Sequence record: OV032902.1
Length of the DNA: 64,000 nucleotides
Direction: 5' to 3' (one strand)
Part shown: piece by piece, positions 3,420 through 45,100 of the stretch
Layout of the letters: each line of letters starts with the position of its first letter
How positions within the stretch are numbered: position 1 is the first letter of the stretch
Notes under the pieces: model-generated
What the model was told of the DNA's origin: nothing
What the model saw: the letters and a program-made list of their open reading frames with translations, nothing else
Databases searched by the model: none
Made by a program: the position numbers and the translations under genes

Positions 3420-3425
3420 AAGCAT

Positions 3426-3915: not shown

Positions 3916-3916
3916 C

Positions 3917-4483
3917 TTAATCAAGTCTTTTGATGATCTGATCTAACCAATACAATCCCACACAAGTAGCATCAATACTGTGCTCGTCTAAATCATCTAT
4001 TTTGATATCACCCATGTCTACGTCAACGCGTTTCTTAAGACCTTTAGTCATAAGAGTCTTGTCGCTTCCTTTAGCACCCATAAATTTCTTTACAGGAGTA
4101 GGTTCAATAAACATGAACGGCATGGTCCAGTCATAGATATAACCAGCTTTACGCAAAACCATACATTGCTCTTTAAGTGCCCCGAATGCCGCAGCAAAGC
4201 GTCCCATATAAGGAGCTTCAGAACCAACCATGTAAGGTTCGACTCTTTTACAAAGTTCTACGAGATGAGACTCATAGCCTTTTAGCTTGGCGTACTTGTC
4301 ACCATGGATTTGAGCAAACAATTTGTTCTGGGTTATGAACTGATTACCCTTGACTGTATACGCAGTCAATACTGATATCTTCTTAGTTTCTAAGTTTAAA
4401 GACAATACAGAGAATCCACAGGTGTTAGTACCAGGGTCTATAGCGATGATGCGTAATTCATCATCGCCATAACCTTTTCGCAT
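3917..4483 (-). CDS. ruvC: RuvC-like Holliday junction resolvase
   Basis: IIAIDPGTNTCGFS, VGSEAPY and DEHSIDATCVG supply the RNase H-fold acidic residues; its ATG overlaps the upstream TAA. Confidence 0.9.
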   Translation of the reverse strand: MRKGYGDDELRIIAIDPGTNTCGFSVLSLNLETKKISVLTAYTVKGNQFITQNKLFAQIHGDKYAKLKGYESHLVELCKRVEPYMVGSEAPYMGRFAAAFGALKEQCMVLRKAGYIYDWTMPFMFIEPTPVKKFMGAKGSDKTLMTKGLKKRVDVDMGDIKIDDLDEHSIDATCVGLYWLDQIIKRLD

Positions 4484-5310
4484 TAGCTCAATAGACCTAG
4501 TGCGTTACCGAGACGTAGTCGTTGACGAATCTCAGTTGTTTGTGATTGTAGTTCACGACGACCACCACCTAGGTAAGCTAGGATTTGTGAGCCGATAGCT
4601 TCTGTGTAAGAAGCAGAGATAGAACCAGCAACTGTGTTAATACCACGGTCGAAAGAAGAAGCAATACCCATTTCAGAGATTACCGCTTTACGACGGTCAC
4701 CATAGATGATATCAACAGCATCAAGGATAGATGCAATTTCAGCAGGAGTAATAAGAATTTCTTGTACGTCAGAAACAGACAAGAAGATATTAGTTGCTGA
4801 GTTGATTTCACCGTCAACCATAGAAACAGGTTGAGGGTTGTACTGTGCGTCACTAGGGACATACGGAGTACGAGATGGTGGGTTAACAGAAGTATCAACG
4901 ATTTCGATGTCGCTGCTTGTGTTAATAGAGTTAAGAACTTTAGCGTAGTACGCAAAGTAATCAACGCCATTGTAGTTAACTAGTTTACGAAGACGATAGT
5001 TACGACGCTCTTCGTCTGTAAGGTCATCATTCACTTCGCGTAGTACGAAAGGAAGATGCTCAAACAAACACGCATTGTTAATGCGATGCTGACGAGTGTT
5101 CGTAATATCGATGCCTTCGTTCTCATGGCCACCGCGTCCGATAACCAAAAGTTTAGGCTCTGGGAATTCATCCTGAGCAAGAGGAGTGTTTTCCTCAATT
5201 TCGAAATAACCATTTAGCGTAGAGAACGCTGCTGGTACATAAGTGTTACCTGGACGGCGTGCAGCTTCTAGCTGGTTTGCCCAGATGGTTTTAACAGTAC
5301 TGTTAGACAT
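4483..5310 (-). CDS. Virion structural protein, phiKZ gp127-like
   Basis: STLN..F.I, LVIGRGGH, LFEHLPFVLRE..DDLT..ER..YRLRK and YFAYYAKVL motifs; conserved position next to RuvC (recalled). Confidence 0.65.
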   Translation of the reverse strand: MSNSTVKTIWANQLEAARRPGNTYVPAAFSTLNGYFEIEENTPLAQDEFPEPKLLVIGRGGHENEGIDITNTRQHRINNACLFEHLPFVLREVNDDLTDEERRNYRLRKLVNYNGVDYFAYYAKVLNSINTSSDIEIVDTSVNPPSRTPYVPSDAQYNPQPVSMVDGEINSATNIFLSVSDVQEILITPAEIASILDAVDIIYGDRRKAVISEMGIASSFDRGINTVAGSISASYTEAIGSQILAYLGGGRRELQSQTTEIRQRLRLGNALGLLS

Positions 5311-5320
5311 GTTCGATTCC

Positions 5321-7396: not shown

Positions 7397-7502
7397 ACGG
7401 CCCTCCGATGTATATAAAGCTCTACACAATTTGTTTTCCGGATACTATTGTTTTTAATGGGGTTGGCTAATTTAATAGAATATTTACAAAGGAGAAACCC
7501 CC

Positions 7503-10325: not shown

Positions 10326-10367
10326 ATAAAAAGATTCGGACACAGCAATGTGTCTGAATCTCTTTTT
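10326..10367. terminator. Terminator hairpin after the portal, overlapping an early promoter
   Basis: AAAAAGATTCGGACAC-AGCAAT-GTGTCTGAATCTCTTTTT; A-run before and T-run after. Confidence 0.75.
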
Positions 10368-10387
10368 ATCTCTATATTACCTTATTG
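10355..10387 (+). promoter_or_regulatory. Early (virion RNAP-type) promoter, copy 1
   Basis: TGAATCTC...ATCTCTATATTACCT; TATATTAC is the published phiKZ early promoter core; motif recurs four times in the window. Confidence 0.7.
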
Positions 10388-12035: not shown

Positions 12036-12074
12036 TGAATCTGAAAGATATTTCATCTCTATATAACCTATATG
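12036..12074 (+). promoter_or_regulatory. Early promoter, copy 2
   Basis: TGAATCTGAAAGATATTTCATCTCTATATAACCTATATG, nearly identical to the copy at 27275. Confidence 0.75.
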
Positions 12075-12678: not shown

Positions 12679-13017
12679 ATGTTTAAACTATTTACTGATA
12701 TCAAACAAAAAGTAACTAACTTCTTCAACGGTGCTTACCTTGCACTTAAATCTGCATTCGCTTCAGAAAACAAAGCTGATGCTGCGATGTCTTATGCTGT
12801 TAACGCTAAAGACATGCCACTTGATGCAGCTACTCGTGCTGGTATCAAGTTCGGTGGTGTTCTTGGCTTCAACGTAACTCACCCACTACAACTATCTGTA
12901 CTTGGTATTTACTTTGTAGCTGAAGCTTTCTTCGGTGCTGGCCTTGTTGCGGCACTATGTGGCGTAGTAATTATTCCTGTAGTTACTGCTACTCTATGTG
13001 CAATCTTCCTTGACTAA
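12679..13017 (+). CDS. MFKLF-family protein with hydrophobic C-terminus
   Basis: GGAG RBS; N-terminus MFKLFTDIKQKVTNFF shared with neighbours. Confidence 0.75.
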   Translation: MFKLFTDIKQKVTNFFNGAYLALKSAFASENKADAAMSYAVNAKDMPLDAATRAGIKFGGVLGFNVTHPLQLSVLGIYFVAEAFFGAGLVAALCGVVIIPVVTATLCAIFLD

Positions 13018-18184: not shown

Positions 18185-18949
18185 ATGAAAACTCGTCTAA
18201 CTTTCGCTATCGCTGCTGTTCTTGCTTCTACTTCTGCTTTCGCTGTAGACTTCTCAACTACTCACACTACTGGTACTACAACTACTTCGGTTGACATCAA
18301 CCAACAAGTAACTGGTAAAGTGAATGGTCTAGAATTCAACTACTCGCAAAACCGTGGTGCAGCAGCAGGTGGCGTGAACGGCAATAACTGTGTTGGCGCT
18401 GTTTGTGATGGCACTGGTAATGATACTCTATCTGTAGGTATCTCTATCGACGCTACTCAAACAATCACTAAGCTAGACCAACTAACTACCGGCCTGTCAG
18501 TAACTACTGCTGAAAACTGTGACGTAACTGTTGCTATCGGCGGTATCTCTAACAGCCAAGGTGTTCGTACTTCACACACTATCGGTGAAACTGAAACAGT
18601 TAACAACAACAAAACTTGGATCACTTCTGGTTCAATCGAAGTTGTTACTCAAACTGACGCAGGTTACACTGGTGGTCACTGGAGCCCATCTAAGCTAGGT
18701 AACGACTTCACTGTATCTATCGGTGGTCAAACTGTAAGCTCTGAAGGTGACGCAGTAAACGTTATGGCACTATCAACTGCACTACTTGGTGATCTAACTC
18801 AAGTAACAGTTGGCGGTCAAGATCTTGCACATGCAGACACTAACGCAATGTCTGTTAAGATCGAGTCTAGCAAAATCAAAGTTATCGATACTTCTGTATC
18901 TACAACTGAAACAGAATCTTCTTCTACTACTTGGTACGAAAACAACTAA
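18185..18949 (+). CDS. Secreted Thr/Gly-rich beta-structured protein
   Basis: Sec signal peptide MKTRLTFAIAAVLASTSAFA; long T/S-rich beta-like segments; strong codon bias; first gene after the promoter. Confidence 0.8.
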   Translation: MKTRLTFAIAAVLASTSAFAVDFSTTHTTGTTTTSVDINQQVTGKVNGLEFNYSQNRGAAAGGVNGNNCVGAVCDGTGNDTLSVGISIDATQTITKLDQLTTGLSVTTAENCDVTVAIGGISNSQGVRTSHTIGETETVNNNKTWITSGSIEVVTQTDAGYTGGHWSPSKLGNDFTVSIGGQTVSSEGDAVNVMALSTALLGDLTQVTVGGQDLAHADTNAMSVKIESSKIKVIDTSVSTTETESSSTTWYENN

Positions 18950-27030: not shown

Positions 27031-27059
27031 ACCCGCCTCCTTCGGGAGTGCGGGTTTTT
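27031..27059 (+). terminator. Rho-independent terminator
   Basis: ACCCGC-CTCC-TTCG-GGAG-T-GCGGGT followed by TTTT. Confidence 0.75.
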
Positions 27060-27087
27060 CTTATTCTCTTTATAAAAGGATATCATT

Positions 27088-27228
27088 ATGCCTACAGTTC
27101 CAGGTACTCAAACTCCACGACGTCCTATGGTGGCACCGCGTTTTCAAATGCCTATCTCTAGTCACCGTCTTTTATTACTGCAATCACAAAGCCAGTGGTA
27201 CATGAAGAACAAACCAACTAGTAAGTAA
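27088..27228 (+). CDS. 46-aa basic, Pro-rich peptide, not in the ORF track
   Basis: AAGGA RBS; MPTVPGTQTPRRPMVAPRFQMPISSHRLLLLQSQSQWYMKNKPTSK (no acidic residues). Confidence 0.5.
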   Translation: MPTVPGTQTPRRPMVAPRFQMPISSHRLLLLQSQSQWYMKNKPTSK

Positions 27229-27274
27229 TATCATCGCAGTCGCTCTATGGAGCGGCTGCTATTGGTAGTATTTA

Positions 27275-27313
27275 TGAATCTGAAAAGATATTCATCTCTA
27301 TATTACCTATATG
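27275..27313 (+). promoter_or_regulatory. Early promoter, copy 4
   Basis: TGAATCTGAAAAGATATTCATCTCTATATTACCTATATG directly upstream of the adhesin gene. Confidence 0.75.
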
Positions 27314-27379
27314 AGATTGCACACGTAATCTTATAAACCACATCTAATCTTATTTAAATAACTTCAAAGGAAGACTATT

Positions 27380-29410
27380 ATGAACACTCGTAAAACTGTA
27401 ATCGCAACTCTTATCGCTCTAGCAACTACTCCAGCTCTAGCAGCAGGCCACATCGGTAACCAGTCTGGTAACGACAATGACGTTGATATTGTTGTAGGTG
27501 ACATTGAAACAGTAATGGGTAACATCTGTAACCAATCTGGTTCTAACAACGATTGTGATGTTGACATCGAAAACGTAAACGGTGATCTAGTGATCGCTGA
27601 TGGCGCTAACGTAACTATCAATCAATCTGGCGGTGGTGCTGATAACCGTACCGGTGTACTTCAAACTAAGTACGACTGGGGTACTCGCGTTTCAACTGTA
27701 GATCACCGTGAAGACGGCACCAAAGCAGTTGAGTCAGTTAACTACTACAAAGACGGTAAGGTTGTTGTTGCTACATGGTATGAAACCGCAGATGGTGAGC
27801 GCACTAACTACGAGCAAAACCTAGTTGCAAGCAATGCTACAAGTCTTGACCATGCTCTACTTAAAGGTAAGGTTGATTCTAACAAAGCTGCGTCTGAGCG
27901 CGGCGATGCTGCACTGCAAGCACAGATTGATGCATGGGTTGATACTGATACAGTTCGCTCTGATGCAGAAATCAAAGCTGTTGCTGATGTAGGTGACAAA
28001 ATCCTAGCTAATGAAATCGACGCACTACGTGACGAGCAAGTAGCTAAGAACAATGCGCAAGACACAGCAATCAAAACTCAGTGGGATCTGATCCAAGATG
28101 TTGAAGCTAAGAACGAAGAGCAAGACGTTGCCCTAGCAGGTAAAGTTGACCGTGAAGAGTTCGAAGCATCTCAGGCAGCACAAGACGCTGAACTAGATCG
28201 TCTAACTAACGATGTAGATGCAGCACAGTCTACAGCTGACCAAGCATTCGCTGACGCACAACTAGCTAACCAAAAAGCTGACGCTAACACTACAGCAATC
28301 GCAGATCAACAAGAGCAGCTAAACCAAACAGCTGATCGTGTTACTTCAGTAGAAAACAATGTTGCAGATCTAGACAATCGTGTAACAGGCGTTGAAGCTG
28401 AACTAGGTAACAAAGTTAACTACGATGAGTTCCTAGCTGACCAGCAACGTCAAGACCAAGCTATCGCTGATGTTAATAACAAAGTAGATGGCGTGCAAGA
28501 TCAAGTAAACAACCTAGACGGTCGTGTAAACGATGTTGAGCAAACTGCAAACGCAGCTATGGATCAAGCAATCTCTGCACAGCTAACTGGTGAGTACGCA
28601 CAAGAACTTGCATACGGTGCACTAGAAGGTGTTCAACAAAATGCTGAGACAATCAACCAAGTAGCGGCTGATTCTCTAGAGCGTGACAACAACCTACTAG
28701 AAGCAATCGACGAAACTCACGAGCAGTCTCTAGAGCGTGACAACATGATCGTCGAGTACGTTGTTGCTGATCAAGAGCGTCAAGATGCAGTTATCGCAGA
28801 AAACGATAAAGCATCTAAAGAGCGTGATGCTGAACTAGCTAAAGCAGTAACTACTGTAGATGCTAAAGCTGAAGCTAACAAAGCGGAAATCGCTAAAGTT
28901 GAAACTGAGTCTAAAGACCGCGATGCAGCTATCGTAGCTAACCAAGCTAAAGTAGATGCTAAGCAAGACAAAGTGTTCAACGATTACCGTGTAGTTCAAG
29001 AGCAAGTAGATGCGGGTCAATTCGCAGCTATCGATTCTCTAGAAGCTGAGCTATATGCACAAGCTGGTGTTAACGCACGTCAAGACAAGTCTATCGCTGC
29101 ACTAAGCAACCGTATGGGCAAAGTTGAAAAGCGTGTATCTGCACTAGAAGGTCGTATGGACAAAGCTGAAGCTGGTATCGCAAACGCTATCGCTATGCAA
29201 GGTCTAACTGACAACATGCTATCTGTAGCAGTTGGTGGTTACGAAGGTGCATCTGCAATCGCGTTCGGTTCTGTAATCCCTGTTGGTCAAATCATGGCTG
29301 AGAAAGGTTACGCTACATTACCTGGTCTTAAAATTAAGACATCAGGCTCTGTATCGATTCAGACAGGCGATACAGCAGCATCTATTGGTGTAGGTTTCGA
29401 TTTTAAATAA
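27380..29410 (+). CDS. YadA-like trimeric autotransporter adhesin
   Basis: Signal peptide; long D/N/Q-rich coiled-coil stalk; C-terminal anchor RMDKAEAGIANAIAM...LSVAVGGYEGASAIAFG ending ASIGVGFDFK. Confidence 0.85.
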   Translation: MNTRKTVIATLIALATTPALAAGHIGNQSGNDNDVDIVVGDIETVMGNICNQSGSNNDCDVDIENVNGDLVIADGANVTINQSGGGADNRTGVLQTKYDWGTRVSTVDHREDGTKAVESVNYYKDGKVVVATWYETADGERTNYEQNLVASNATSLDHALLKGKVDSNKAASERGDAALQAQIDAWVDTDTVRSDAEIKAVADVGDKILANEIDALRDEQVAKNNAQDTAIKTQWDLIQDVEAKNEEQDVALAGKVDREEFEASQAAQDAELDRLTNDVDAAQSTADQAFADAQLANQKADANTTAIADQQEQLNQTADRVTSVENNVADLDNRVTGVEAELGNKVNYDEFLADQQRQDQAIADVNNKVDGVQDQVNNLDGRVNDVEQTANAAMDQAISAQLTGEYAQELAYGALEGVQQNAETINQVAADSLERDNNLLEAIDETHEQSLERDNMIVEYVVADQERQDAVIAENDKASKERDAELAKAVTTVDAKAEANKAEIAKVETESKDRDAAIVANQAKVDAKQDKVFNDYRVVQEQVDAGQFAAIDSLEAELYAQAGVNARQDKSIAALSNRMGKVEKRVSALEGRMDKAEAGIANAIAMQGLTDNMLSVAVGGYEGASAIAFGSVIPVGQIMAEKGYATLPGLKIKTSGSVSIQTGDTAASIGVGFDFK

Positions 29411-29463
29411 TCTATTACAAAGGGCCCTTAATGAAGGGCCCTTGATAATAGAGGAGTAAAGAA

Positions 29464-30132
29464 ATGAAAAAAGGAGAAATTTTTAAATCTTTGTCCTATG
29501 GTGATTTTATCATTATTGATGCAAAAGATTGCATGAAAGTAAAAATACGTTTTGTCGATACTGGAACATATAGAATCGTCCAAGCAGGAGCAATCAGAAA
29601 TGGACGAGTCAGGGACCCATATCGTCCGATTTACCATAATCGTGGTTTCTTGGGAGATGGTCATTACAACAGTCATGTACATAAAGAACTTTTTAGACGA
29701 TGGGTGAAAATGATCTCCAGGTGCTACGATAGCAAGGACAAAGACTTTCCGCGATATGGACTAAAAGGCATAGTTGTTGCCTCGACATGGTTTAACTTCC
29801 AAAATTATGCCAGCTGGGTTCATAGTAACTTACTTGACATTGGAAAAGACTTAGATGACCTAAAGCTATTTCATATCGACAAAGACTTAAAGTCCGGACC
29901 AATAAAGACATATGGCCCTGACACATGTACACTGTTAACAATTAAAGAAAATTCGTCAATGACAACCCCTAGAAAGTCTAGGAAGATAACACTTGTTTCT
30001 CCGGAAGGAAAGTTAGTCTGTGACGAGATTAGTAATTTGTGCCGCGATTTTAAACTGACTAGATCCAAAGTCTATAAACTCATAAACAAAACCGCCAGTC
30101 ATCACAAAGGCTGGAAACTACACGGCGCCTAA
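29464..30132 (+). mobile_element. Free-standing HNH homing endonuclease gene
   Basis: RWVKMISRCY...RYG..GI.V...WFNFQNY..W...HIDKDL...YGPDTC...EN pattern plus NUMOD1-like C-terminus; AT-rich codons (AAA, ATA, AGA) unlike its neighbours. Confidence 0.8.
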
Positions 30133-33882: not shown

Positions 33883-36800
33883 ATGGCTATTATTAGAAAA
33901 GCTCTCATTAAGTTTTATTTGACTAAAGCTGAAGCAGCGACTGCAAATGAAACTCCGGGCGACATCGGTTACTTTAGTGACGGTGCCCCTGCCGGTTGGT
34001 TTGAAGCCTCAATCGATAATGGAAATCCTGCTGTCGATGGTAATACGCTACAAGGTAGTGAATCTAACCTTTACTGGAAGCGTATCGTTAATGCGGAAAC
34101 TGAAGCTCCTACTCCGGTTCTTGTTCCAGATGCTTATGCGGAAGGTACTGCTTATCAACAATACCAAATCGTTGAGTCTGGTGGCAAGCTGTACGTTTGT
34201 GATTCTGCTCACACGCCAACCGCTGCTGAAGTAACTAGCCTTGCTAAGGTTACTGAACTTGGCACGGGCGCAGCTGGTATTGCTGATGTAGTCGCTGTGG
34301 AATACAAAGCCACCGAAACATACAAAGCATTTGAGCTTGTTTACATCGGCACGGATATCTTTGTTACTTCTTCTGCGCATACTGCCGATGCAGATAACGT
34401 AACCAACAAAGACCAGCTTATCCAGCTTAATGGCGGTGGCGGTTCTTTGGATGAAGTAGTTGCAAAAGAATACGTAGCTGCTACGCTATACAAGGCATAT
34501 GAACTAGTGCGTATTGGTAGCGAAATCTTTATCTCTGGTTCAGAACACACGCCAACCGCTGGCGAAGTAGCTGACAAGTCTAAGCTTATCCCAATAAGTG
34601 AAGATAAAGATACTGGCCCTGGTGTTCATACATCAGTGGCTAACGAAACTGATTACCGTAAAGGCGATGTTTTCAAACTAGCTAACGGTATCTTCATGCT
34701 TAAGGTTGACTTCACTACTGATGCAAATGCTACTGATGCAGAAGTAATCGCACAGTGTGAAAAGCTAGCTGGTCCTGAAGCTTCTGTTCGTACTTCGTTT
34801 ACCAATAGTACTGATTACTTCAAAGGCGATTTCTTTATCTTTGATTCTGGTACTTACCGTGTTAAAGCTGACTTCCAGACCGATGCAAATGCTACTGAAG
34901 CAGAAATTATTGCAGCGTGTGATAAGCTTTCTGGCCCTACTCAGAAAACTTATGCAGGCTTCCCTGCATCAACTGCATTCAGTATCGGCGATATTGTTAC
35001 TGAAGATGACCGCAGCTATGTAGTTAAAACGGCGTTTAGTACTGGCGCGTCAGACAACACGGTCACTGATCAAGAAACTAACCTTCTACCTTTGTTCGCA
35101 GAGCATTTGGTTCCACGTGTGTATAGTAATGGCGCAGTACTTAAAGAAAACGAAATCTTTGAGTATGGCGGTAACCTTTACTTTACTCCTAACTCGGTTG
35201 ACGGTACGTCTACTAACCAAACAACTTGGGCGGAAATTGAATCAAGCTGCATCCTAGTTGCTCAGGTTCCAGTAACCGCAACTCCTGATTTCGTAGCAGC
35301 TAACACATACAACGCCAATGATGTTGTTAAATTCGACGGACTAGAATGGAAGCTTACTGGTACGCACACTGTCAATGATCCTATTGACTTGACTAACTGG
35401 TCTCGTGTTATCACAACAGGCGTTAACCGTGGTGAGCACAAAACAAACCATGTTTACTTGAAAGACGACATCGTCACAAGGAGCGGCATTGCTTATAAGG
35501 CAAACGCTAATGTGGACGACACCGTTAGTTTCGCCGAAGGATTATCAGGCGCGACCTTTATTCGCCTAGACACAGCAGTGTTCGATGGACTGTCTAATTC
35601 CAAGGTTTATATAGTAGGCGATATCGTTTCAGCCGGTACGGCATCGTATGCAGTACACACTGCTTACAAGTCTGCTGCCGCTGCTACTGAAGCAGAGCTA
35701 GCTGCTAACTCTACATTGATTGCAACCAGTATCGAAACTTACTTGCCTACATACACAAACGGTAGTGCATTGAAGAATGGTCAATTGTTCTTCTATGATG
35801 AAGCTGTTTATCGCGCAGACGCGGATAAAGATGGTACAACTGCTAGCGAAACCACATGGGCTGAAATCGAAGGCGAAATGACGTTCTTGTTTAGCTTTAA
35901 GGTTGAACCGGCTCCTGCTGCATGGGCTAAGGCTAACGCTTATGCTGTTGGCGATAAAGCCACTTATGCTGGTCAGGTTGTAGTTGCTACTGCTGCATCT
36001 GCTGCTAACGACGAGTTCTCGTATAGTGATTGGACCCGTGAATTGGATTATCCTTACAATCAGGGCGATCACGTAAACGGCCGTGCTTACATGAAGGGCG
36101 ACGTAGTCTTTATTGATAGTGTTGAGTACATTGCACGCTCTAATGTTGATTCTGATGCCGGTGCTTCCGAAATCAAACTAGGCGTGTCTTCTGACTTCTA
36201 TCGTTTGACTCCGACCACTCATAGTGATCTAGTTGCAGACACTTTATACTCTAACTTTGATATCGTTATCAAAGAAGGCATTACGTATCTTGTAACGACT
36301 CCTATTCTTACAACTAGCTCTACAACCTGGAATGACCTTGTAGCGAACATGACTGTGGTTGCAGATAACTCTGCGTATGCGGTTCGTGAATACGTTGCAG
36401 AAGAAGACCTGAAGAAGTACGAGTTTGTCGTAGAGCCCGCAACAGGTGACGTTTACGTTACAACTAGTGCTATTGCCGGCAACGCAGGTAACACATTCCA
36501 AATCGTTAAAGACAACGGCGTTCGCGTAGCTGAATCTCCAGTTACTCCTGTTCCTGACTTTGACGCTGGTGAGCTATATACAGAGAACGACGAAGTTCGT
36601 TTCGAAAGTATGGTGTACACAGCTAAAGACCAAACAGGTCGTTTAGTAAACGATGCATTTAGCCTTACTTACTTTGAGCGTAACATTCCTGCCGGATTTA
36701 AGTTCGGTGACTTCGTAGCCAACAAGTTATACCTAAACGGTGACTTTGTTACAAATGGCGGCATAGAATACAAAGTTAAAGCAACTGGTACTTTTGCCAC

Positions 36801-39800
36801 GTTAACTGAAACTAATACTACGTTTGAGCGTACAAGTACAATCTTCAAGTTTACCCTGGAAGCAGCGAAGCGTTACATCCCAGGTGACTTGCTTTACTTG
36901 ACGAGCGGTGCTTACTACGTGCGTAACGAGTTTACGACTAACAACCCTGCTGATATTGATGACCACGCAGCCGACATTTATGTCATTGCTGAGAAAGATC
37001 ATCCTCCAGTAGAAGAGTATGTTCCTACTCAAGATGGCGAAGAGTTCAAGTTGATCGTTCATAATGAAGGTCTTTACTTCATTAAGACGGCCTGGACTGC
37101 TGATGTATCTAACGCAGATAGTGCTAACTGGACCAATGATACTTTTGACAAGATCAAAGGCAACCTAGTTGAACTTGTTCCTCAGAAGAATCCTACTCCA
37201 ATTGCGTTTGTTCAGGCTGATACATACCAAGAAGACGATTATGTTTCACATGATGGTTTTAATTGGCATCGTAATGACTCTACGACTCGTAAGGGTGGTG
37301 ACGCATTCAGTCTAGATCACTTCAATCGTGAAGAAGCTGGTGGTCAAAATCGTGGTACATTTACTTCCGGTCAACACTACTTATCTGGCGATAAAGTGTT
37401 CGACAACGGAATTGAATATCGTGCTAATACATTGATCAACTACGGCGATGTAACGGTATTCGTTGAAGGTCTGGGCTTACAAGAGTTTGTTCGTATTACT
37501 CCAATCGTTCATCAAGGCTTTGCACCAGATACACTTTACATTCGTGGTGACTGGGTAATTGAAGACGGCGTTACATACTACGTGCAACCTGTGACTTTCT
37601 TTGAGTCTGGCGCAGCTGAAACACTGGCTGAATTTGAAGCACGTAATGAGGTAGAAGTGATTGCGGACCACCGCATCCTTAATCCTCGTGAGTACGTTGC
37701 CAAAGATAATGCCGAGCAAGGCGAGATCATTCAGTACCAAGGTTCCGTTTACTACGTTACTACGGCGTGGGTTTCAGATACTACGGATGCTGATGCGGCT
37801 AACCATGTTAACCATGAATGGGATGCAGTTAAGGATAAAGTCGTTGCGCTTTACCAAACACCTGCCCCAGTACTTCCGGTATTTGATGCAGCCACTGCAT
37901 ACAATGCCAATGACGAAGTTCAGGATAAATATGGTTTAGTTTGGACTCGTCGTAATGTTGCAGACGGAACAGCACAACCATTGACTGAAACTCACTGGAC
38001 GCGTAATGATGCTGACCCGCAGATCTTCGAACATATTCCTGATCGCGAGTACACATACCTGCCTAACGACAAGATTAAATACGGAACATCTTACTTCCAC
38101 TTTAATCTAGCCAATGACCTTGCTTCGGCGGATATTGATGAATGGGCTACGTGGCTAGAAGCTAACACTCGAATCGAACCTACCGGCGAGATTAAGATTG
38201 TGGCTGGCAACGGGAGTCTGACCGGACTTGAGTATGTTGCACCTGGTCAACTAGTAAGCTTCCTAACGGACGGCACGCTTAATGGCCTTCAAGGCAAGCA
38301 AGGCGAAACATACGTTATTACGTCTACGATGCGTTCTACCACTCTTAACAAGGCATACTTTGTTAAGATTGCTGAGAAAGCTAAACTGGCAACTGCATTT
38401 GATGCTACGGCGACATATGCAACTGGTGACTTAGTTACTATTGCCGAAGATAGCTTTACTTATGAGCTAACCGGTACGCACAATGTTAACGATGCGTTTA
38501 ACTTGACTAACTGGTCTCGTGTAGAACCAGCACAGCACCGTGGTGCACATAGCGATGCAGTTTACTATATCACCGGTGATAAGGTTACTAATGCTGGCAA
38601 AGAGTACGAAGCTCTTGGTCCTATTAGTAAGACAGCTTTTGCTGAAGGCATTGCAGGTAATACATTCAAGCGTGTTACTCAAAACGTTGCTGCTTCTTTA
38701 ACGGCTGACATGTTCTATGTTGAAGGCGATATCTTTAACTTGAATGGTTATGACCTAGAAGTAACTGCTGCGTTCCAAGCTGATGCTGACCCAACGTTCG
38801 CTGAGAACATTGCTAACATGCAGGCAATCAACGTAGATGAGAAATACTACTTGGCTGCTGCTGACGGCGTAGCGTTCCATGACTACAACAAGAAAGAGCA
38901 TGTGTTTATCTTCACCGAAGATCGCTCGACTGAGTTGTTTAATGGTTTCACACCTATGACTGGCGACCGCATGGTTCTTAAGCGCGACCGTACGGCTACG
39001 AACAACCCTCCAATAGCGGCTGACTTTGATATCTTCCTAGCGAAGCAAATCGAAGATGCTATTGAGCCGCATGATGATGGCACTGCTTACTTGACTGGCG
39101 ACAAAGTAACTTACCAAGGTTTTGTTTGGACTTCTACTGAAGCTCAATCGGCTCTTGTTTGGGACTTTACTAAGTGGACTCGTGACCTGCCTGGTGGTGA
39201 ACATCGCGGTACGTTCAGCAATGCTGTACACTACCGTACAGGCGACACCGTAACCCATCCTGATGATGGTGCTTTGTATGCAATCAATTCTAACGTTGAT
39301 AGCGTAGCTGCATTTAACATCGGCTCACTTGCGGCAGAATGGACGCGTGTTGGTCCTGGTATCTTCACGGATGCCTCGGTCGTGGCATGGAATACTCAGT
39401 TCTTTAAAGGCGATCGTCTATACTTCGGTAAGCAGTACCGTACTGTAACAGAAGACTTTGCGATTGGTGCTGACCCTGCCGATGGCTCTGTTCCTGAACT
39501 GGATGAAACCAAGCTTCGCATCGAAGGTCGTTGGGACCGCTCTAACGTTCGTACTGTTACGGCAGACGAGTCTGTTAGTGCAGAAGAAGTTGTTCGCTAC
39601 GGCAACAAACTTTACTTTGTGTTTGCTGACTATGTGCCAAGTGACCCTGTGGTTGCTGCCGAGCTAGAAGCGAAGATTTACGAACTCGTAAACTTTGAGT
39701 CCACTCAGCACGAAGCATACGATGCTGCCAAGATATATGCCGAAGGCGATATCGTTTCTTATCAAGACGAAATCTTCCAGCGTACTAATGATACCATTGG

Positions 39801-40938
39801 TGATGCAGGTAACTTTACTGCTGCTCGCTGGACTAAGTTGTCTGAGAAGAGTGTACGTACTGCTGGTGTTCTAGCAGACATGAATGACTGGTATGTTGGT
39901 GTTGATGACATAGTTCACTATCAAGGCATTACACTTACCGCTAAGGTAGCTCGCGGTGTTGATGAACTCAAGATTCCTTTCGATGATACTAAGTTCGATC
40001 GTGCTGGTAACTTTGTGTTTAATACGGCATTCTCTTACCTTGGCAGACGCGCTCTAATCAAAGGTGACTTTATCATTGACGGTCGTAACATGTATTTTGT
40101 TACAGCTGCTTTTGAGGTCCTTGATGGCGAGTCTTGGGATAATGCTCTTCGTACACATCAATCTAGCTTCCGCTTAGTCGGTGACTATGAGTTACTTGAT
40201 TGGCAAGCAGATACTTTCTATCGTACTGGTGACCTTGTTAAAGTACAGGGTTATGAGATGGTAGTAGTTGCTAACCATACTTCAGCTTCTGCTTGGAATA
40301 CTGGTGAGCTTCTTAAGTTTGTGTTGCGTGATCAGCCTACTTACGGCTTTACGATGGAAGCTACTGACTTCATCCCGGCTGGAACTAAGTTTGATACTAA
40401 CGGTGATGATGACTCAAGCACAGCACTGCCGTTTACTATTACTGGCACGGTTCCTTTGGCAAACATAAATCTGTTACTTCAAGTCGGTTTCCGCTTCTTT
40501 GTGAATAAGACTGATATCACAGACGCTATTGTGGTCGATGGTTCGGATGCAACGCTCTTTGATATGGGCAGTATCTTCCTTGAAGCTGGAGATGTCTTAG
40601 AGATTGCTGGTTACCAGAATGGCGAAGGTACAAGTATCGCAGAAGTAGTCCAAGGTGGTTATGCTGACCTAACAGTTACTCCTACGACAGCTAATGTTTC
40701 ATTGACGGATGCTAACAAAGGTCAAGTCATTGACATTACTGCGGCGATCACAGTAACTGCTGCTGGTGGTACTACTGGTTCTACATGGACTGTTGTTAAC
40801 CGTTCAGGCGGACAACTAGCTGTTACACTGGGTACTGGTATTACGGCGATCGGTAACGTTAACGTTCAGGATGGTACAGCGATTACTCTAGTTATGCTAG
40901 ACGCTACGACTGTGCTTATTGCTGGTGGTGTTGCTTAA
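33883..40938 (+). CDS. 2351-aa fibre/appendage protein with about 35 CBM5/12 (ChiC_BD)-like modules
   Basis: Repeated Y..GD.V...G..(Y/W)...W units counted by eye, e.g. WAKANAYAVGDKATYAG, HDDGTAYLTGDKVTYQGFVW, WQADTFYRTGDLVKVQG; tail-fibre-like C-terminal beta domain. Confidence 0.75.
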   Translation: MAIIRKALIKFYLTKAEAATANETPGDIGYFSDGAPAGWFEASIDNGNPAVDGNTLQGSESNLYWKRIVNAETEAPTPVLVPDAYAEGTAYQQYQIVESGGKLYVCDSAHTPTAAEVTSLAKVTELGTGAAGIADVVAVEYKATETYKAFELVYIGTDIFVTSSAHTADADNVTNKDQLIQLNGGGGSLDEVVAKEYVAATLYKAYELVRIGSEIFISGSEHTPTAGEVADKSKLIPISEDKDTGPGVHTSVANETDYRKGDVFKLANGIFMLKVDFTTDANATDAEVIAQCEKLAGPEASVRTSFTNSTDYFKGDFFIFDSGTYRVKADFQTDANATEAEIIAACDKLSGPTQKTYAGFPASTAFSIGDIVTEDDRSYVVKTAFSTGASDNTVTDQETNLLPLFAEHLVPRVYSNGAVLKENEIFEYGGNLYFTPNSVDGTSTNQTTWAEIESSCILVAQVPVTATPDFVAANTYNANDVVKFDGLEWKLTGTHTVNDPIDLTNWSRVITTGVNRGEHKTNHVYLKDDIVTRSGIAYKANANVDDTVSFAEGLSGATFIRLDTAVFDGLSNSKVYIVGDIVSAGTASYAVHTAYKSAAAATEAELAANSTLIATSIETYLPTYTNGSALKNGQLFFYDEAVYRADADKDGTTASETTWAEIEGEMTFLFSFKVEPAPAAWAKANAYAVGDKATYAGQVVVATAASAANDEFSYSDWTRELDYPYNQGDHVNGRAYMKGDVVFIDSVEYIARSNVDSDAGASEIKLGVSSDFYRLTPTTHSDLVADTLYSNFDIVIKEGITYLVTTPILTTSSTTWNDLVANMTVVADNSAYAVREYVAEEDLKKYEFVVEPATGDVYVTTSAIAGNAGNTFQIVKDNGVRVAESPVTPVPDFDAGELYTENDEVRFESMVYTAKDQTGRLVNDAFSLTYFERNIPAGFKFGDFVANKLYLNGDFVTNGGIEYKVKATGTFATLTETNTTFERTSTIFKFTLEAAKRYIPGDLLYLTSGAYYVRNEFTTNNPADIDDHAADIYVIAEKDHPPVEEYVPTQDGEEFKLIVHNEGLYFIKTAWTADVSNADSANWTNDTFDKIKGNLVELVPQKNPTPIAFVQADTYQEDDYVSHDGFNWHRNDSTTRKGGDAFSLDHFNREEAGGQNRGTFTSGQHYLSGDKVFDNGIEYRANTLINYGDVTVFVEGLGLQEFVRITPIVHQGFAPDTLYIRGDWVIEDGVTYYVQPVTFFESGAAETLAEFEARNEVEVIADHRILNPREYVAKDNAEQGEIIQYQGSVYYVTTAWVSDTTDADAANHVNHEWDAVKDKVVALYQTPAPVLPVFDAATAYNANDEVQDKYGLVWTRRNVADGTAQPLTETHWTRNDADPQIFEHIPDREYTYLPNDKIKYGTSYFHFNLANDLASADIDEWATWLEANTRIEPTGEIKIVAGNGSLTGLEYVAPGQLVSFLTDGTLNGLQGKQGETYVITSTMRSTTLNKAYFVKIAEKAKLATAFDATATYATGDLVTIAEDSFTYELTGTHNVNDAFNLTNWSRVEPAQHRGAHSDAVYYITGDKVTNAGKEYEALGPISKTAFAEGIAGNTFKRVTQNVAASLTADMFYVEGDIFNLNGYDLEVTAAFQADADPTFAENIANMQAINVDEKYYLAAADGVAFHDYNKKEHVFIFTEDRSTELFNGFTPMTGDRMVLKRDRTATNNPPIAADFDIFLAKQIEDAIEPHDDGTAYLTGDKVTYQGFVWTSTEAQSALVWDFTKWTRDLPGGEHRGTFSNAVHYRTGDTVTHPDDGALYAINSNVDSVAAFNIGSLAAEWTRVGPGIFTDASVVAWNTQFFKGDRLYFGKQYRTVTEDFAIGADPADGSVPELDETKLRIEGRWDRSNVRTVTADESVSAEEVVRYGNKLYFVFADYVPSDPVVAAELEAKIYELVNFESTQHEAYDAAKIYAEGDIVSYQDEIFQRTNDTIGDAGNFTAARWTKLSEKSVRTAGVLADMNDWYVGVDDIVHYQGITLTAKVARGVDELKIPFDDTKFDRAGNFVFNTAFSYLGRRALIKGDFIIDGRNMYFVTAAFEVLDGESWDNALRTHQSSFRLVGDYELLDWQADTFYRTGDLVKVQGYEMVVVANHTSASAWNTGELLKFVLRDQPTYGFTMEATDFIPAGTKFDTNGDDDSSTALPFTITGTVPLANINLLLQVGFRFFVNKTDITDAIVVDGSDATLFDMGSIFLEAGDVLEIAGYQNGEGTSIAEVVQGGYADLTVTPTTANVSLTDANKGQVIDITAAITVTAAGGTTGSTWTVVNRSGGQLAVTLGTGITAIGNVNVQDGTAITLVMLDATTVLIAGGVA

Positions 40939-42145: not shown

Positions 42146-45100
42146 ATGAGTTATGTAACTAATTTCCCTGGTGGCTTTCAAAGCTCTACAGATAAGCCTC
42201 TAGATTACCGTGCTGTGGTAGACGACATCTCAGCACTAGAAGCAGTTGTGCTTCAAACTGTTTATATCGGTCTAGTTATCTACGATAAAGCGACTGGCAA
42301 ACACTATGAGATCAAGGGTACGGATGGTACACAAGCTGGTCTTGTTTACTCTGTCTTTGGTCAAGGCAGTGATTCTGATTCTGCACTAGCCGATATCATT
42401 ACTACTCGTAATCCAACTAAGAGTGATGACGCTGACTCTTCTGAGTTTACAGTCAACGCCCTTACAAGCTGGTTAAACAAAGACACAGGTGAGCTGTTCC
42501 TTTGTACGGACAACACTGCGGGTGCAGCTAATTGGATTCGTTACGTTACCGAAGGTGACTTGACTGGTTTAACTCCTGGTAATACTTTTGTCATCGAAGA
42601 ATTAAACATCCCAGTTAATGCCCCAGCGGACAGTAATTACGAATTTAATATCAGTCTTCCAAATCTGACTGCGTATGTCAATTCAACTATAGATCTTTTC
42701 GTCAACGATGAATTGCTTGTGTCGACTCCATTAGTGATGAATACCGATGATTATGTCATTACGGCTCCATTGAAGAAAAACGATAAAGTCGAATTTCGAA
42801 TGGGTCTATCTGGCAATGTGCCTATTGAGGTTCTGGGCCTTGGTAATGGTTCAGAGGTTGCAGAATTTCTTCCAAATGGCGATATTATCTCGGCTTCGAG
42901 TGCGTCTTCCGATCCTGACATAAGAAGAATAAACACTAAAGACGGAACGATTAGTAGTGTTATTGAAACCGGGTTGCCGAGTGCTTTTATTTCGGAATCA
43001 GGCTCAATTAGATTAACTGTCGATTCAGAGGGAACTTTGTTCGCGTCTAGAAATTCCAGAACTTCCGATGAGATTTATTTTCTTAAATTAGGCAGTAATT
43101 CATGGGAAACATTAACAATACCAGAAGGAGCGATAACATGTAGATGGCTATCGATGTATGACGAAGATCATCTTTTAAATGTTGATTCGGACAATCAGCT
43201 CCTTCAAAAGATCAATAAGGTCACCGGTCAATCGTCGCCAGTCTCTAATGTTCCTGGTACGATTGCTACTAACTGGAGATCCAGATACGTAGGAAACGGC
43301 CAGCTTTTGTTCACACGAGGAACTAGCCTAGGACCTATTCTTTTTGATACGGTAAATGAAACAACACTCATAGATTTTTGGGCAACTGCCGGAGAAATCG
43401 TTTTTGGTTCGAATGAGCAGTTTTACGGTGGCGATAAAGTAGAAGATGATGTTTTCATCTTTAACACATTGAACATGGATAATCACTATTTATGCCGAAA
43501 AGGAAAATGGGAAATCGACGCAGGTCCTTTAAATAGTTCCCGCAATGTTGCTGTTTCTGACCTAGGTGTTTATTTTTATCCTGCTGCTTCGACTACATTG
43601 GCTTCTACACTGCGACTTTATTCGCATGCTGATAGCTTCCGTGCTTCGGCCTATGCGGAACCAACTGCTTACTTTGCACCTACTCTAGATCTTGCTTTTG
43701 GTATCTTAGAGACACGCGACCCGATTGAAACAGATGATTCTGCTTCCGTTACTTACGATATCGCAGTTAACCAGACTTGGAAGAATGAAACAACAGGTTC
43801 TGTGTTTGTTTGTGCGGATGCAACTCCTGGCGCAGCTGTTTGGAAGAAGTACGTAACAGAAGATGAGCTTCCAGGTAAGTCTACGCTTAACCTAATGCGC
43901 TTCCCTGAGTTAAGAGTTTCAGTTGATTTGGAAACCGCCGTTCCAGACGAAACTACACCGCATCAATTTTCAACTCTTGATCTTACGATCCCTAAAGACG
44001 GTAAATATCACTTAGGTGGTAGCTTCCCTATTTCAGGTCTTAACCTTCCTCCGATGAGTACAAGTCAAGCAGGTAGTGCTATTACTAACTTCTGTCTTGA
44101 TTTGATGTTGTTCCGCGATAGTACATTGAGTCCTCTAGTTCGTGGCGATATTTCGATCATGACTAACGACGTGACGCAGGATAACTATGACTTCTTTGGT
44201 AAGGCAAGCTTTGATGAGATCTTGGATCTTAAAGCAGGCGATGTTCTAACGTGGCAATTCTACACCACTTCAAACATCCCACCTACGGCAGATGCATTCC
44301 TGTTCATTAACCCTACAGATGGTAACTCTGTTGCGTCTCAGGGCCACAAGTCAGCTCCGTGGCTGCGTGAACTAGAAGTAGCTACTTATCTTCCTGCTGG
44401 TGATTACACGTACGGTATCAAGTCTACTCGTGACCCAGGTCCAACGGATGATGAGAACTCTACTGACTTCGCTATTGCGATTAACCAAGTATGGTTTAAC
44501 GAAACAAATGGTAAGACATTTGTTTGTCAAGACGCTACAGCGGACAATGCAGTATGGAATGCTTACGTAACAGCTGACCAAATCCCTGGCTTCCAGGATA
44601 CTCAGTATGTTTCATTGACAGATGTTACTCAATTCGCCACTGTAAGCGAAACAGCACTTCACCGTTTTGGTATTACACTAGCTGGTACCGATCTATCGGG
44701 CGCTACCCTGTGGATGACTGTTAATGGCAATGATGCTATTCAGTTTGATTTGAGTGGTCTAACGGGTGCCGGTACACGCATGTACTCTACGGACCAATTT
44801 ACGGCTCTTAACAAAGATGACGTGATTGCATTCCGTTGGGTTCCTAATGGCGCTGTTATTAGTTCGTTTGGTTTTGCTGGTGGTATTCAGCCAACTACTT
44901 ACTATGCTCCATTGAAAGACTTTGAACTAGGTATCAAGGAAACTCGTGACCCTACTCCAAATGATGACGAAAACTCTCCTGGTTTGTTTATTCAAGTAAA
45001 CCAAATCTGGCATAACGAAGCTACGGCTTCTATCTTTGTATGTACAGATGCTACTGTGGGAGCGGCTGTTTGGAAGCGTATGGTTACAGAGAATGACTTG

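Follow-up and report, generated by a model that had tools for sequence, protein, structure and literature searches.

To our knowledge, all full-length trimeric autotransporters (TAAs; type Vc secretion) that have been characterised are adhesins. The YadA head, neck and YadA_stalk modules are typical of these proteins, but not defining. Among phages, the Eib immunoglobulin-binding proteins from E. coli prophages belong to the same class. YadA homologues have also been recorded in virulent phages (PMC3728262; PMC5449768), and UniProt names YadA-like proteins in phiEco32, SKML-39, Yoloswag, fHe-Yen9-04, TG1 and phiR1-RT. From UniProt and these two papers, YadA-like genes are thus already known in virulent phages, jumbo phages included. 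They have been seen there for more than 10 years and are usually flagged as possible 'virulence genes'. In phage T5, early alteration of the host surface ('lytic conversion') is brought about by Llp, an early exclusion lipoprotein targeted to the outer membrane (PMC9586334; bioRxiv 10.64898/2026.03.26.714494). A meaningful link between jumbo phages and trimeric autotransporters was not found in the literature.

The gene described here, SM033_00292, lies in a 64-kb window (the whole stretch of DNA that was analysed) from the Vibrio phage vB_VpaM_sm033, a nucleus-forming, phiKZ-like jumbo phage of 320 kb of which we found no mention in the literature. Since the sm033 record annotates genes for a nuclear shell protein and for a split multisubunit RNA polymerase (beta), and annotates no integrase, there is support for regarding sm033 as an obligately lytic, nucleus-forming jumbo phage of the phiKZ type, in line with a first-pass annotation of this DNA, which had presumed a lytic jumbo phage. 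No tRNA genes were found within the window. The same annotation had called the product of SM033_00292 a YadA-like trimeric autotransporter and had given the Eib proteins of temperate phages as the only precedent. The former claim was upheld by Pfam, a family profile, an AlphaFold model and fold matches, and every sequence element named was found in place, with two of the adjectives overstated. The precedent was incomplete, and the finding is less surprising than had been assumed, because YadA homologues of virulent phages are already on record in the two papers and in UniProt.

Domain architecture of the SM033_00292 protein

From the N- to the C-terminus, the protein is laid out as a predicted Sec signal peptide, a small head with two cysteines, a coiled-coil stalk of about 440 residues and an anchor of one helix and four strands (Table 1). 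Taken together, sequence comparison and structure prediction support the assignment of SM033_00292 as a gene for a divergent YadA-type TAA.

Table 1 Features of the SM033_00292 locus, with positions in the window.
Feature	Position	Strand	Evidence or remark
Intrinsic terminator, GC-rich hairpin and U-tract, closing the upstream operon	27031..27062	+	-18.2 kcal/mol, z=-4.9, then TTTTT
Small ORF upstream of the second hairpin	27089-27229		
Second stable hairpin, just 5' of the promoter motif	27236..27259	+	RNA fold -19.5 kcal/mol, z=-4.4
Phage-specific promoter motif, putative early promoter	27275..27308	+	leave-one-out weight matrix, genome-wide copies
Motif core TATATTAC	27299-27306	+	TGAAT-type element 18 nt upstream of the core
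Shine-Dalgarno AGGAAG, 6 nt upstream of the ATG	27368..27373	+	direct sequence reading
CDS, trimeric-autotransporter-like protein, 676 aa	27380..29410	+	ATG start; SM033_00292, record label 'hypothetical protein'
Predicted Sec signal peptide, aa 1-21, cleavage after A-L-A	27380..27442	+	n/h/c regions by inspection, hydropathy profile
Head domain, aa 22-85, N/D/G-rich repeats, invariant C50 and C59	27443..27634	+	alignment of relatives
Lineage-specific beta-rich segment, aa 86-165	27635..27874	+	alignment gaps in all relatives, closest included
Coiled-coil stalk, aa 166-600	27875..29179	+	periodicity, helix prediction, weak trimeric coiled-coil matches
YadA-like membrane anchor, aa 601-676	29180..29407	+	Pfam, family profile, AlphaFold, Foldseek
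Very stable hairpin right behind the stop codon, without U-tract	29411..29452	+	RNA fold -25.4 kcal/mol, z=-6.7

The assignment depends above all on the anchor. Pfam YadA_anchor (PF03895), the profile that the first-pass annotation had proposed as a check, matched aa 613-675 with E=4.8e-4 and 20.6 bits, compared to a cut-off of 22.7 bits. Two of the homologues, P0002 (30.8 bits) and GR7B_00058 (32.3 bits), pass this cut-off, and P0007 scores 22.4 bits. When the PDB was searched with the single sequence, YadA was reached at only E=0.32 and a profile was needed; with a profile of five family members, the YadA anchor (2lme) was matched at E=1.2e-8 and Hia at E=1.3e-4. Membership among the YadA anchors is therefore indicated by family and profile evidence, the Pfam score of the sequence on its own being too low. 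For aa 540-676, AlphaFold gave a model (pLDDT 77.6) with the fold of TAA anchors, i.e. a helix (aa 541-607) and then four strands per chain, predicted at aa 614-621, 624-633, 651-661 and 664-674, and a short helix inserted at aa 635-641. The best five Foldseek matches of this model in the PDB were all TAA anchors, namely Hia (three entries, among them 3emo and 2gr7), AtaA (9vnj) and YadA (2lme). The anchor is peculiar in that a 9-residue insertion separates strands 2 and 3 and that one residue follows the terminal Phe. This Phe is invariant in the family, penultimate in most members (F-K in sm033) and terminal in P0002 and GR7B_00058. Thus, a YadA-type anchor was correctly recognised in the first-pass annotation, but 'canonical' was too strong a word for it because the Pfam score lies below the cut-off. 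Since the anchor is under the cut-off and ends in F-K instead of the aromatic residue that acts as beta-signal for BAM, recognition by BAM is treated here as an assumption.

Most of the 11 family members are annotated as 'hypothetical' or 'coil containing protein'. This poor annotation is explained by the anchor falling below the Pfam threshold, and a family-specific profile would repair it. NCBIfam gave nothing useful for SM033_00292 and two relatives.

In the stalk, each third of aa 166-600 has a hydrophobic periodicity of 3.45-3.7 residues, the observed power of which was reached by 3 of 200 shuffles. This periodicity and the continuous helix predicted by AlphaFold for aa 541-607 bear out the coiled coil that had been noticed initially. 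Weak profile matches were obtained to the trimeric coiled coils of Lpp, P22 gp26 (the tail needle) and reovirus sigma-1, and none to YadA_head, neck or YadA_stalk in Pfam (E<=1) or NCBIfam (E<=0.1). At 0.148 nm per residue, aa 166-607 would measure about 65 nm when fully extended. In four relatives, collagen triple-helix repeats over the Pfam cut-off replace part of the stalk. These repeats, together with the stalk matches to trimeric coiled coils, indirectly suggest that the protein forms trimers.

The signal peptide likewise held up on inspection by eye, with R4 and K5 in the n-region, a hydrophobic core with a Kyte-Doolittle mean of up to 2.2 across 11 residues, and the predicted cleavage site A-L-A/A. 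The head behind it contains I-x-N-Q-S-G repeats at aa 25-36 and 49-60 and a partial third at aa 80-89, all kept in relatives, and houses both of the exactly two family-invariant cysteines, which, given the signal peptide, would fit an oxidising extracytoplasmic location. In P0001, P0002 and P0005, the head is 64-74% identical despite diverged stalks and anchors, the identity of which goes down to 19-29% across the same phages; this difference suggests that a ligand is conserved across phages. Only 8 matches to the head were obtained among 1.84 billion representative proteins; they lie in Vibrio-phage DNA wherever the context is readable. The head has no Pfam relative, and a head profile gave zero matches in the PDB at E<=10. 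While the repeats reported in the first-pass annotation are real, their description as curlin-like was rejected on the basis of this PDB result and of the absence of a Curlin_rpt (Pfam) match in SM033_00292 at E<=1. What curlin (CsgA) and the head appear to share is short N/Q/G-rich repeats that probably form beta strands; in contrast to curlin, the sm033 repeats carry cysteines and acidic runs. Mimicry of the receptor-binding protein of sm033 by the head was also dismissed, since the six-frame ORFs of the genome contain no head paralogue. A word-index search with aa 22-165 gave no matches and missed the known relatives too, for which reason its result is not counted as evidence, and the AlphaFold model of aa 22-175 was unusable (pLDDT 49.7) and was kept out of the fold search. 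For aa 86-165, three strands were predicted with pLDDT 63-71, and no paralogue of this segment was found among the six-frame ORFs of the phage genome.

Transcription unit, codon usage and genomic setting

SM033_00292 is the first gene behind the promoter motif, as had been noted at the outset, is probably also the sole one, and is bracketed by stable hairpins, of which the one behind the stop codon is the probable end of the transcription unit. Genome-wide, there are 24 exact copies of the core TATATTAC, about 18 of them in extended context and 30-90 nt 5' of plus-strand genes. In the leave-one-out weight matrix, the copy before SM033_00292 scores 39.5, the best of 20 genome-wide instances. 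The bare 8-mer count within the window is uninformative (3 found vs 2.5 expected), and the motif is taken as real because of the extended 11-mer and of its position upstream of genes. A sigma-70 promoter was rejected for SM033_00292, the best scan match being 9/12 and overlapping the start codon. The core is the consensus of phiKZ early promoters (PMC7058600 Table 2; PMC7598289 section 4). In the metagenomic relative L004, the homologue is also preceded by the motif and a terminator, and in Vibrio phages of about 145 kb, which are unrelated, the homologues lie behind 2-3 tandem near-consensus sigma-70 promoters with a perfect TTGACA. By analogy, i.e. because the core does not differ from the phiKZ consensus and the homologues in the ~145 kb phages stand behind strong promoters, SM033_00292 would be transcribed early, and the motif would be a putative target of the virion RNA polymerase. 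The 'near-perfect early promoter' of the first-pass annotation has been confirmed as a motif, distinct from sigma-70 promoters, and 'early' is supported by analogy.

The strong codon bias that had been remarked upon was confirmed: with an effective number of codons (ENC) of 33.0, SM033_00292 ranks 4th of 226 ORFs, and the genome median is 46.1. The RSCU deviations correlate with those of the major head protein, the nuclear shell protein and the tail sheath (r=0.80-0.86). Codon usage, biased like that of the major head and nuclear shell genes, points to high expression of SM033_00292. A codon bias equal to that of structural proteins, combined with a position between the endolysin and the giant tail-fibre genes, would also suit a component of the virion, for instance a whisker or fibre with coiled-coil or collagen-like segments. 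Phage fibres often have segments of this kind, and the weak stalk matches include the P22 tail needle and reovirus sigma-1. We consider such a location highly improbable: a Sec signal peptide and a beta-barrel anchor would remove the protein from the cytoplasm, where these phages are assembled; the gene has an early-type promoter of its own between terminators; its absence from the closest isolates, vB_pir03 and C-ZP2022, shows that it is not a core structural gene; and PHROGs, in which there were just weak matches to families of unknown function, puts the protein in no structural family.

The gene is part of a lineage-specific variable island of about 25 kb, beside a homing endonuclease, and a public assembly contig of 1.2 kb (ERR10359840) has a copy truncated by a single 1-nt indel. 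Both observations would be compatible with a recently acquired passenger gene that has no role in the lytic cycle. This is very unlikely in view of a codon usage adapted to the highly expressed set of the phage, of the best promoter copy in the genome, of a head family that is known from phage contexts only, with at least three lineages represented, and of the closest relative, which is 64% identical over the C-terminal half and has kept the gene order. Synteny was judged at the protein level against vB_pir03, as none was detectable with relatives at the nucleotide level. Searching 50,697 phage records by tblastn with the sm033 protein returned itself and GR7B only, a word-index search limited to aa 545-676 matched P0001 only, and scans of IMG/VR with the sm033 protein and with P0006 yielded no relatives. 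The full family alignment has no stretch of sufficient conservation to serve as a query for such scans.

The GR7B relative is almost headless, and the homologues in T4-like Yersinia phages, 90-122 aa long, comprise little beyond the anchor. Because of these proteins, the function that the phage proteins have in common may do without an adhesive tip. The Yersinia proteins would also agree with the anchor barrel being the active part, with the passenger secondary and the outer membrane perturbed or permeabilised or BAM occupied, for example as an accessory to lysis. The endolysin gene about 3 kb upstream and the lack of an annotated spanin in the sm033 record would go along with this. Such an activity seems very improbable to us, as a lysis gene would not be expected to have an early-type promoter and a transcription unit of its own, a conserved head on a 440-residue stalk would be pointless, and neither a lipobox nor a transmembrane helix of the spanin kind was found in SM033_00292 by sequence and hydropathy.

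Possible roles of a putative phage-specified surface fibre

In the pathway that we propose, it is presumably the virion-borne RNA polymerase that would transcribe SM033_00292 from the phiKZ-type early promoter soon after infection, and translation would be efficient. The protein would be exported via Sec, and the host BAM would insert a 12-stranded barrel, to which each of three chains contributes four strands, into the outer membrane. The passenger would then thread outward to give a trimeric coiled-coil fibre of about 65 nm, tipped by the small N/D-rich head, which would probably be disulfide-bridged. As a consequence of this export and fibre formation, the infected Vibrio cell would be coated with a fibre specified by the phage, i.e. 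its surface would undergo 'lytic conversion'. With regard to the role of the fibre, we prefer that of an early-made adhesin or agglutinin on the infected cell, because this is what the full-length members of the family do in bacteria; this preference is tentative and falls somewhat short of calling the role probable. The fibre would stick the infected cell to neighbours or particles, and progeny would be released amid dense hosts. The label 'agglutinating adhesin' that UniProt gives to phage homologues was counted for this role, and the head having no detectable relative of known function was counted against it.

The location in a variable island beside giant tail fibres is no less compatible with a receptor-related role than with adhesion. 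Made and exported in the same way, the early ~65 nm fibres could instead form a canopy that keeps rival and sister phages off the outer-membrane receptors and that, after lysis, masks receptors on the debris, the job that Llp does for T5 (PMC9586334; bioRxiv 10.64898/2026.03.26.714494). An early-type promoter and a very strong codon bias suit fast production in coat-forming amounts, and the gene adjoins host-range genes in three lineages (giant tail fibres in sm033 and L004; a tail fibre and a Peptidase_S74 protein in K354 and L010). Moreover, the headless or near-headless homologues imply that a specific tip is not always required. A receptor-specific blocker should, however, co-vary with the receptor of the phage, yet phages whose Vibrio hosts differ have a conserved head; in sequence, the head does not resemble the fibre proteins of sm033, and no TAA is known to exclude phages. 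We see exclusion as possible but doubtful. In its widest form, it would mean that there is a phage-only TAA family with a new cysteine-bridged head, expressed from early promoters (of the virion-polymerase type in nucleus-forming jumbo phages and of a strong host type in other large Vibrio phages) and building a canopy that blocks the adsorption of competitors. As a whole, this proposition is unlikely. If it were true, it would establish a new class of superinfection exclusion at the level of the outer membrane and would assign a function for the first time to the YadA-like genes scattered among lytic phages.

Whichever role applies, the sm033 locus offers a clean case for asking why a lytic phage would equip a cell that it destroys within an hour with a fibre in the outer membrane. 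The gene stands alone between terminators, behind the best copy of an early-type promoter and with a codon bias like that of capsid and nuclear shell genes, and it is a member of a small family confined to Vibrio phages, the tip of which is conserved across unrelated phage lineages. Judging from its sequence, a nucleus-forming phage whose replication is sealed from the cytoplasm would still invest in the host envelope through Sec and BAM.

Comparison with known systems

The bacterial type Vc TAAs YadA, Hia and AtaA have the signal peptide, passenger, coiled-coil stalk and C-terminal anchor in the same order as the sm033 protein, and the same helix and four strands per chain in the anchor. Unlike them, the sm033 protein is encoded by a lytic phage and not by a bacterial chromosome, its head is a new small domain, the YadA_head, neck and YadA_stalk Pfam domains are missing, and the anchor is sub-threshold with its 9-residue insertion. 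The promoter motif resembles the early promoters of the phiKZ family in being AT-rich, in the core, in a T-rich or TTGA-type upstream element and in its presence before many operons (PMC7058600 Table 2; PMC7598289 section 4); in sm033 it is a putative promoter, assigned from sequence.

In a fold search against BFVD, 17 matches in virulent phages were found at E<=1e-3, several of which are named 'agglutinating adhesin' by UniProt. YadA-like genes of this kind, discussed in PMC3728262 and PMC5449768, occur in the lytic phages phiEco32, Salmonella FSL SP-058/-076 and SKML-39, in a Serratia T4-like phage (ORF145), in Erwinia Yoloswag and Y2, and in Yersinia fHe-Yen9-04, TG1 and phiR1-RT. As in sm033, a YadA-type anchor is encoded there by a lytic phage, whereas no sequence match between their products and the sm033 protein appeared in the searches. 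The Vibrio-phage family differs from them by its own head and by collagen repeats in several members, and the sm033 gene by being unannotated and by having a promoter that can be assigned to a class.

The Eib proteins are, as proposed for the sm033 protein, trimeric autotransporters that are encoded by a phage and that the host cell displays. In contrast to the latter, they are encoded by temperate phages, are expressed from lysogens, have a YadA-like head and neck and bind immunoglobulin, and no Eib chains were among the results of the PDB searches with the sm033 protein or the family profile. T5 Llp and the sm033 protein, if the proposal holds, would both be means by which a lytic phage alters the host surface early, and both genes adjoin receptor-binding genes (PMC9586334; bioRxiv 10.64898/2026.03.26.714494). 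The likeness would be one of function only: the two proteins are not homologous, and Llp, a small lipoprotein of the inner leaflet, binds a single receptor (FhuA), compared to a 676-aa protein that would form a surface fibre.

Architecture of the fibre protein and identity of its anchor

The fibre gene (window 27380-29410, + strand) encodes the 676-aa protein SM033_00292, which is annotated as 'hypothetical protein' and whose layout is listed below together with the surrounding features. In the head, I-x-N-Q-S-G repeats occupy aa 25-36 and aa 49-60, with a partial third one at aa 80-89. These repeats had been called curlin-like in the first-pass annotation. The likeness was dropped as unsupported, since a head profile retrieved no PDB relative at E<=10, scans of the fibre protein and its homologues assigned the head to no Pfam family, and no paralogue of it was found in the sm033 genome. 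Neither the family alignments nor a paralogue search of the sm033 genome revealed relatives of the adjoining beta-rich segment. The stalk shows a hydrophobic periodicity of 3.45-3.7 residues in all thirds, the observed power being reached by 3 of 200 shuffles, and its profile gives weak matches to the trimeric coiled coils of Lpp, the P22 tail needle and reovirus sigma-1.

Features of the fibre protein (aa) and of the surrounding DNA (window positions)
Feature	Position	Description
Signal peptide (predicted)	aa 1-21	two positive charges, hydrophobic core, A-L-A/A cleavage site
Head	aa 22-85	N-, D- and G-rich; C50 and C59 are the sole cysteines of the whole protein
Beta-rich segment	aa 86-165	between head and stalk
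Stalk	aa 166-600	A-, D-, E- and Q-rich
C-terminal anchor	aa 601-676	YadA-like
Stable hairpin with U-tract	27031-27055	-18.2 kcal/mol
Stable hairpin	27236-27259	-19.5 kcal/mol
Stable hairpin	29411-29452	-25.4 kcal/mol
Island	27026 to ~51800	fibre gene, HNH homing endonuclease, several unknowns, two giant fibre-like proteins
Giant fibre-like protein	33883-40938	2,351 aa
Giant fibre-like protein	42146-48994	2,282 aa

With the fibre protein alone, the Pfam YadA_anchor model (PF03895) matched aa 613-675 at 20.6 bits (E=4.8e-4), below the cut-off of 22.7 bits, and a single-sequence search of the PDB reached YadA at E=0.32 only. Scores above this cut-off were obtained with two homologues (P0002 from the database searches, 30.8 bits, and GR7B_00058, 32.3 bits); P0007, another database protein, scores 22.4 bits and five other members 13-19 bits. 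A profile built from five C-termini matched the YadA membrane anchor (2lme) at E=1.2e-8, and also Hia (2gr7 and 3emo) at E values of 1e-4 to 5e-4. In the AlphaFold model of aa 540-676, based on a 7-sequence alignment (mean pLDDT 77.6), a long helix leads into four strands, the second and third of which are separated by a short inserted helix. Anchors of Hia (three entries), AtaA and YadA make up the top five of its PDB fold matches, the lower matches being noise. In the alignment, a 9-residue insertion separates strands 2 and 3 in the anchors of sm033 and of the database protein P0001, and the final Phe, invariant in the family, is followed by one extra residue in most members; these peculiarities explain the low Pfam score. 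Homologue scores, family profile, modelled fold and alignment differences together indicate a genuine YadA-type but divergent anchor in sm033, so that the first-pass assignment stands for the type, 'canonical' being too strong a word.

Phage, genomic island and protein family

Window 27000-29700 matches Vibrio phage vB_VpaM_sm033 (OV032902.1, 320,253 bp) at 100% identity, the whole window covering positions 248001-312000 of this record. Genes annotated in the record code for the major head protein, a tail sheath, a terminase and a nuclear shell protein; several split genes are labelled 'RNA polymerase beta subunit', and an integrase is absent from the annotation. The major head protein is closest to those of the isolates vB_pir03 (71% identity), C-ZP2022 (70%) and BONAISHI (44%), followed by remoter relatives among Erwinia, Klebsiella, Pseudomonas and Escherichia (Goslar) jumbo phages. 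This gene set and these relatives identify sm033, as judged from sequence, as a nucleus-forming, phiKZ-like jumbo phage, a group of which, to our knowledge, only lytic members are known; the earlier presumption of a lytic jumbo phage was sound.

Protein-level synteny with vB_pir03 comprises the endolysin and the next four genes, up to window 27025, and resumes from ~51800, ahead of a helicase. The intervening island of ~25 kb in sm033 has a counterpart of 3.4 kb with unrelated genes in vB_pir03. The position of the fibre gene in a lineage-specific island with giant fibre-like genes indicates that it is an accessory gene which travels with host-range genes.

The HNH homing endonuclease directly 3' of the fibre gene (window 29464-30132; phrog_2081, E=2.5e-47) is missing from the corresponding position in L004, a metagenomic relative of sm033. 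A putative 46-aa ORF, annotated as SM033_00291 (window 27089-27229) and proline- and basic-rich, is the sole ORF in the interval from the upstream terminator to the second hairpin. From window 57445 to 64000 and on to the record end (305445-320253), one frame stays free of stops over 14.8 kb or more (4,936 codons as a minimum) and has no CDS annotation in OV032902.1; it runs past the window end and the end of the linear record, and may cross the record ends toward gene 1 (13-7539), although the phase is off by one base.

A word-index search of 5.8 billion proteins returned three relatives of the fibre protein, and an exhaustive head-profile search of 1.84 billion representatives eight proteins only, among which the repetitive protein P0009 looks spurious and P0008 is a 117-aa fragment. 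P0001 is encoded on the 24 kb contig L004 with the gene order of sm033, being followed by two small genes, a 319-aa protein and a giant fibre-like protein of >2,800 aa; the two small genes had no detectable match in the window. The contigs of P0003, P0006 and P0007 (4-83 kb) carry genes for a phage head-tail adaptor, pRha, UvrD helicase, NrdD and a Peptidase_S74 fibre, and the gene adjoining P0002 on its 3 kb contig matches Vibrio phages only (62 records). For the 2.6 kb contig of P0005, searches gave no placement. Using tblastn with P0007, more members were found in isolates K354, K406, K408, 501E54-1, 1.121.O and GR7B, all Vibrio or Enterovibrio phages of 143-208 kb, where they are annotated as 'hypothetical' or 'coil containing protein'. 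Among readable contexts, the head occurs in phages only.

Across sm033, P0001, P0002 and P0005, identity is 64-74% in the head and, P0001 excepted, 19-29% in the anchor region. In several members, collagen Gly-X-Y repeats take the place of part of the stalk; in four of them the repeats score above the Pfam cut-off, and this speaks for a trimer. The 355-aa member of GR7B essentially lacks the head. By these comparisons, the family is modular.

The public assembly contig L011 (Logan ERR10359840, 1.2 kb) equals window 27284-28484 with zero substitutions and one single-base indel, a sequencing error or natural variant that yields the truncated 313-aa product P0004. On the two P0007 contigs, the fibre gene is directly preceded, in the same orientation, by the gene of a 458-aa CapR-domain (PF21817) protein (L007 8380-9756; L008 3863-5239).

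Promoter class and codon usage

A scan for a sigma-70 promoter upstream of the fibre gene gave nothing convincing. The sequence at window 27275-27308 is found near-verbatim again at window 12036-12068 and record position 86678, and in shorter versions at window 10355-10382 and 1246-1257. Its core, TATATTAC, has 24 exact copies in the sm033 genome, ~18 of which lie in an extended context 30-90 nt upstream of + strand genes. This context comprises a TTGA/TGAA-type element ~14-18 nt upstream, TC directly adjoining the core on its 5' side and, 4-5 nt past the core, a weakly conserved TG. Among 20 motif copies scored by a leave-one-out weight matrix, the fibre-gene copy came out top at 39.5 bits. 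The core is the published phiKZ early-promoter consensus and is contained in the longer 201phi2-1 consensus (PMC7058600, Table 2). According to a review, an AT-rich motif found bioinformatically marks early operons in every RNA-polymerase-encoding jumbo phage, and it was confirmed as early promoter in all jumbo phages with profiled transcripts (PMC7598289, section 4). The three hairpins bracketing the fibre gene have z-scores of -4.4 to -6.7, and in L004 a terminator and the same motif precede the homologue by ~73 nt. By its motif, the promoter is assigned to the phiKZ-type early class. As a statement about sequence, the description of the fibre gene as first behind a near-perfect early promoter therefore holds, given motif and hairpins, and by analogy with phiKZ-type motifs its expression would be early. 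In unrelated ~145 kb phages, the homologue is first in a rightward block, beside helicase and Rha genes, and two or three promoters in tandem, with perfect TTGACA and 10-11/12 matches, lie ahead of it. Early transcription by the host polymerase typically starts from promoters of this kind.

The two further near-identical copies of the fibre-gene promoter variant span ~38 nt, the second at record ~86650-86700. In the copy at window 12036-12068 one core base is changed, and the ~600 nt that follow hold no ORF of at least 100 aa, up to the strongly biased gene 12679-13017 (effective number of codons, ENC, 31.7). At window 1246-1257, core and flanking bases fall within a 919-aa ORF (660-3419), which may indicate an internal promoter or a mis-called ORF.

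The strong codon bias noticed earlier was confirmed: the ENC of the fibre gene is 33.0 versus a genome median of 46.1 (rank 4 among 226 ORFs of at least 150 aa), close to the major head protein (30.5) and the nuclear shell protein (33.4). Its RSCU deviations from the genome average correlate with those of the major head protein (r=0.80), the nuclear shell protein (0.86) and the tail sheath (0.74). These values indicate a gene adapted to the highly expressed set of the phage, which argues against a recent, idle acquisition and makes a mere passenger very improbable. The strongest bias genome-wide, exceeding that of the major head protein, belongs to a 254-aa gene at window 18185-18949 (ENC 28.5, rank 1/226).

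Proposed role and other phage YadA-like proteins

Type Vc secretion involves Sec export, BAM-dependent assembly of a trimeric barrel and export of the passenger. By this route, the fibre protein would be exported by Sec, its trimeric barrel assembled via BAM and the passenger exported as a fibre of perhaps ~65 nm (~440 helical residues x 0.148 nm). Full-length members of the trimeric autotransporter family are adhesins or agglutinins and the tip is kept across phages, for which reasons we tentatively favour such a role. The main rival, a canopy of fibres for shielding or exclusion, is somewhat less probable; it would fit the presumed early timing, the coat-level expression predicted from codon bias, the adjoining fibre genes and the fact that some relatives are headless. 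A virion fibre and a lysis accessory are each highly unlikely.

In a fold search of predicted viral structures (BFVD), the anchor model matched 17 viral proteins at E<=1e-3. UniProt names among them are 'YadA-like C-terminal membrane anchor domain-containing protein' or 'agglutinating adhesin', from phages phiEco32, FSL SP-076, SKML-39, Proteus P59, Erwinia Yoloswag and Y2, and Yersinia fHe-Yen9-04, TG1 and phiR1-RT. The proteins of the T4-like Yersinia phages TG1 (A0A0B5A2K4, 90 aa) and phiR1-RT (I7J3Y1, 122 aa) comprise little beyond the anchor, which points to a function of the barrel by itself in some phage members of this fold. Homologues of yadA in virulent phages have been remarked on before, with their role stated as unknown (PMC3728262; PMC5449768). 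In view of these reports and the UniProt-named proteins, a trimeric autotransporter in a lytic phage is a known, unexplained observation. New in comparison are a Vibrio-phage subfamily, almost wholly unannotated, whose head is novel and whose anchor in sm033 scores below threshold, the presence of this subfamily in a nucleus-forming phage, and evidence from motif and codon bias on promoter class and expression level.
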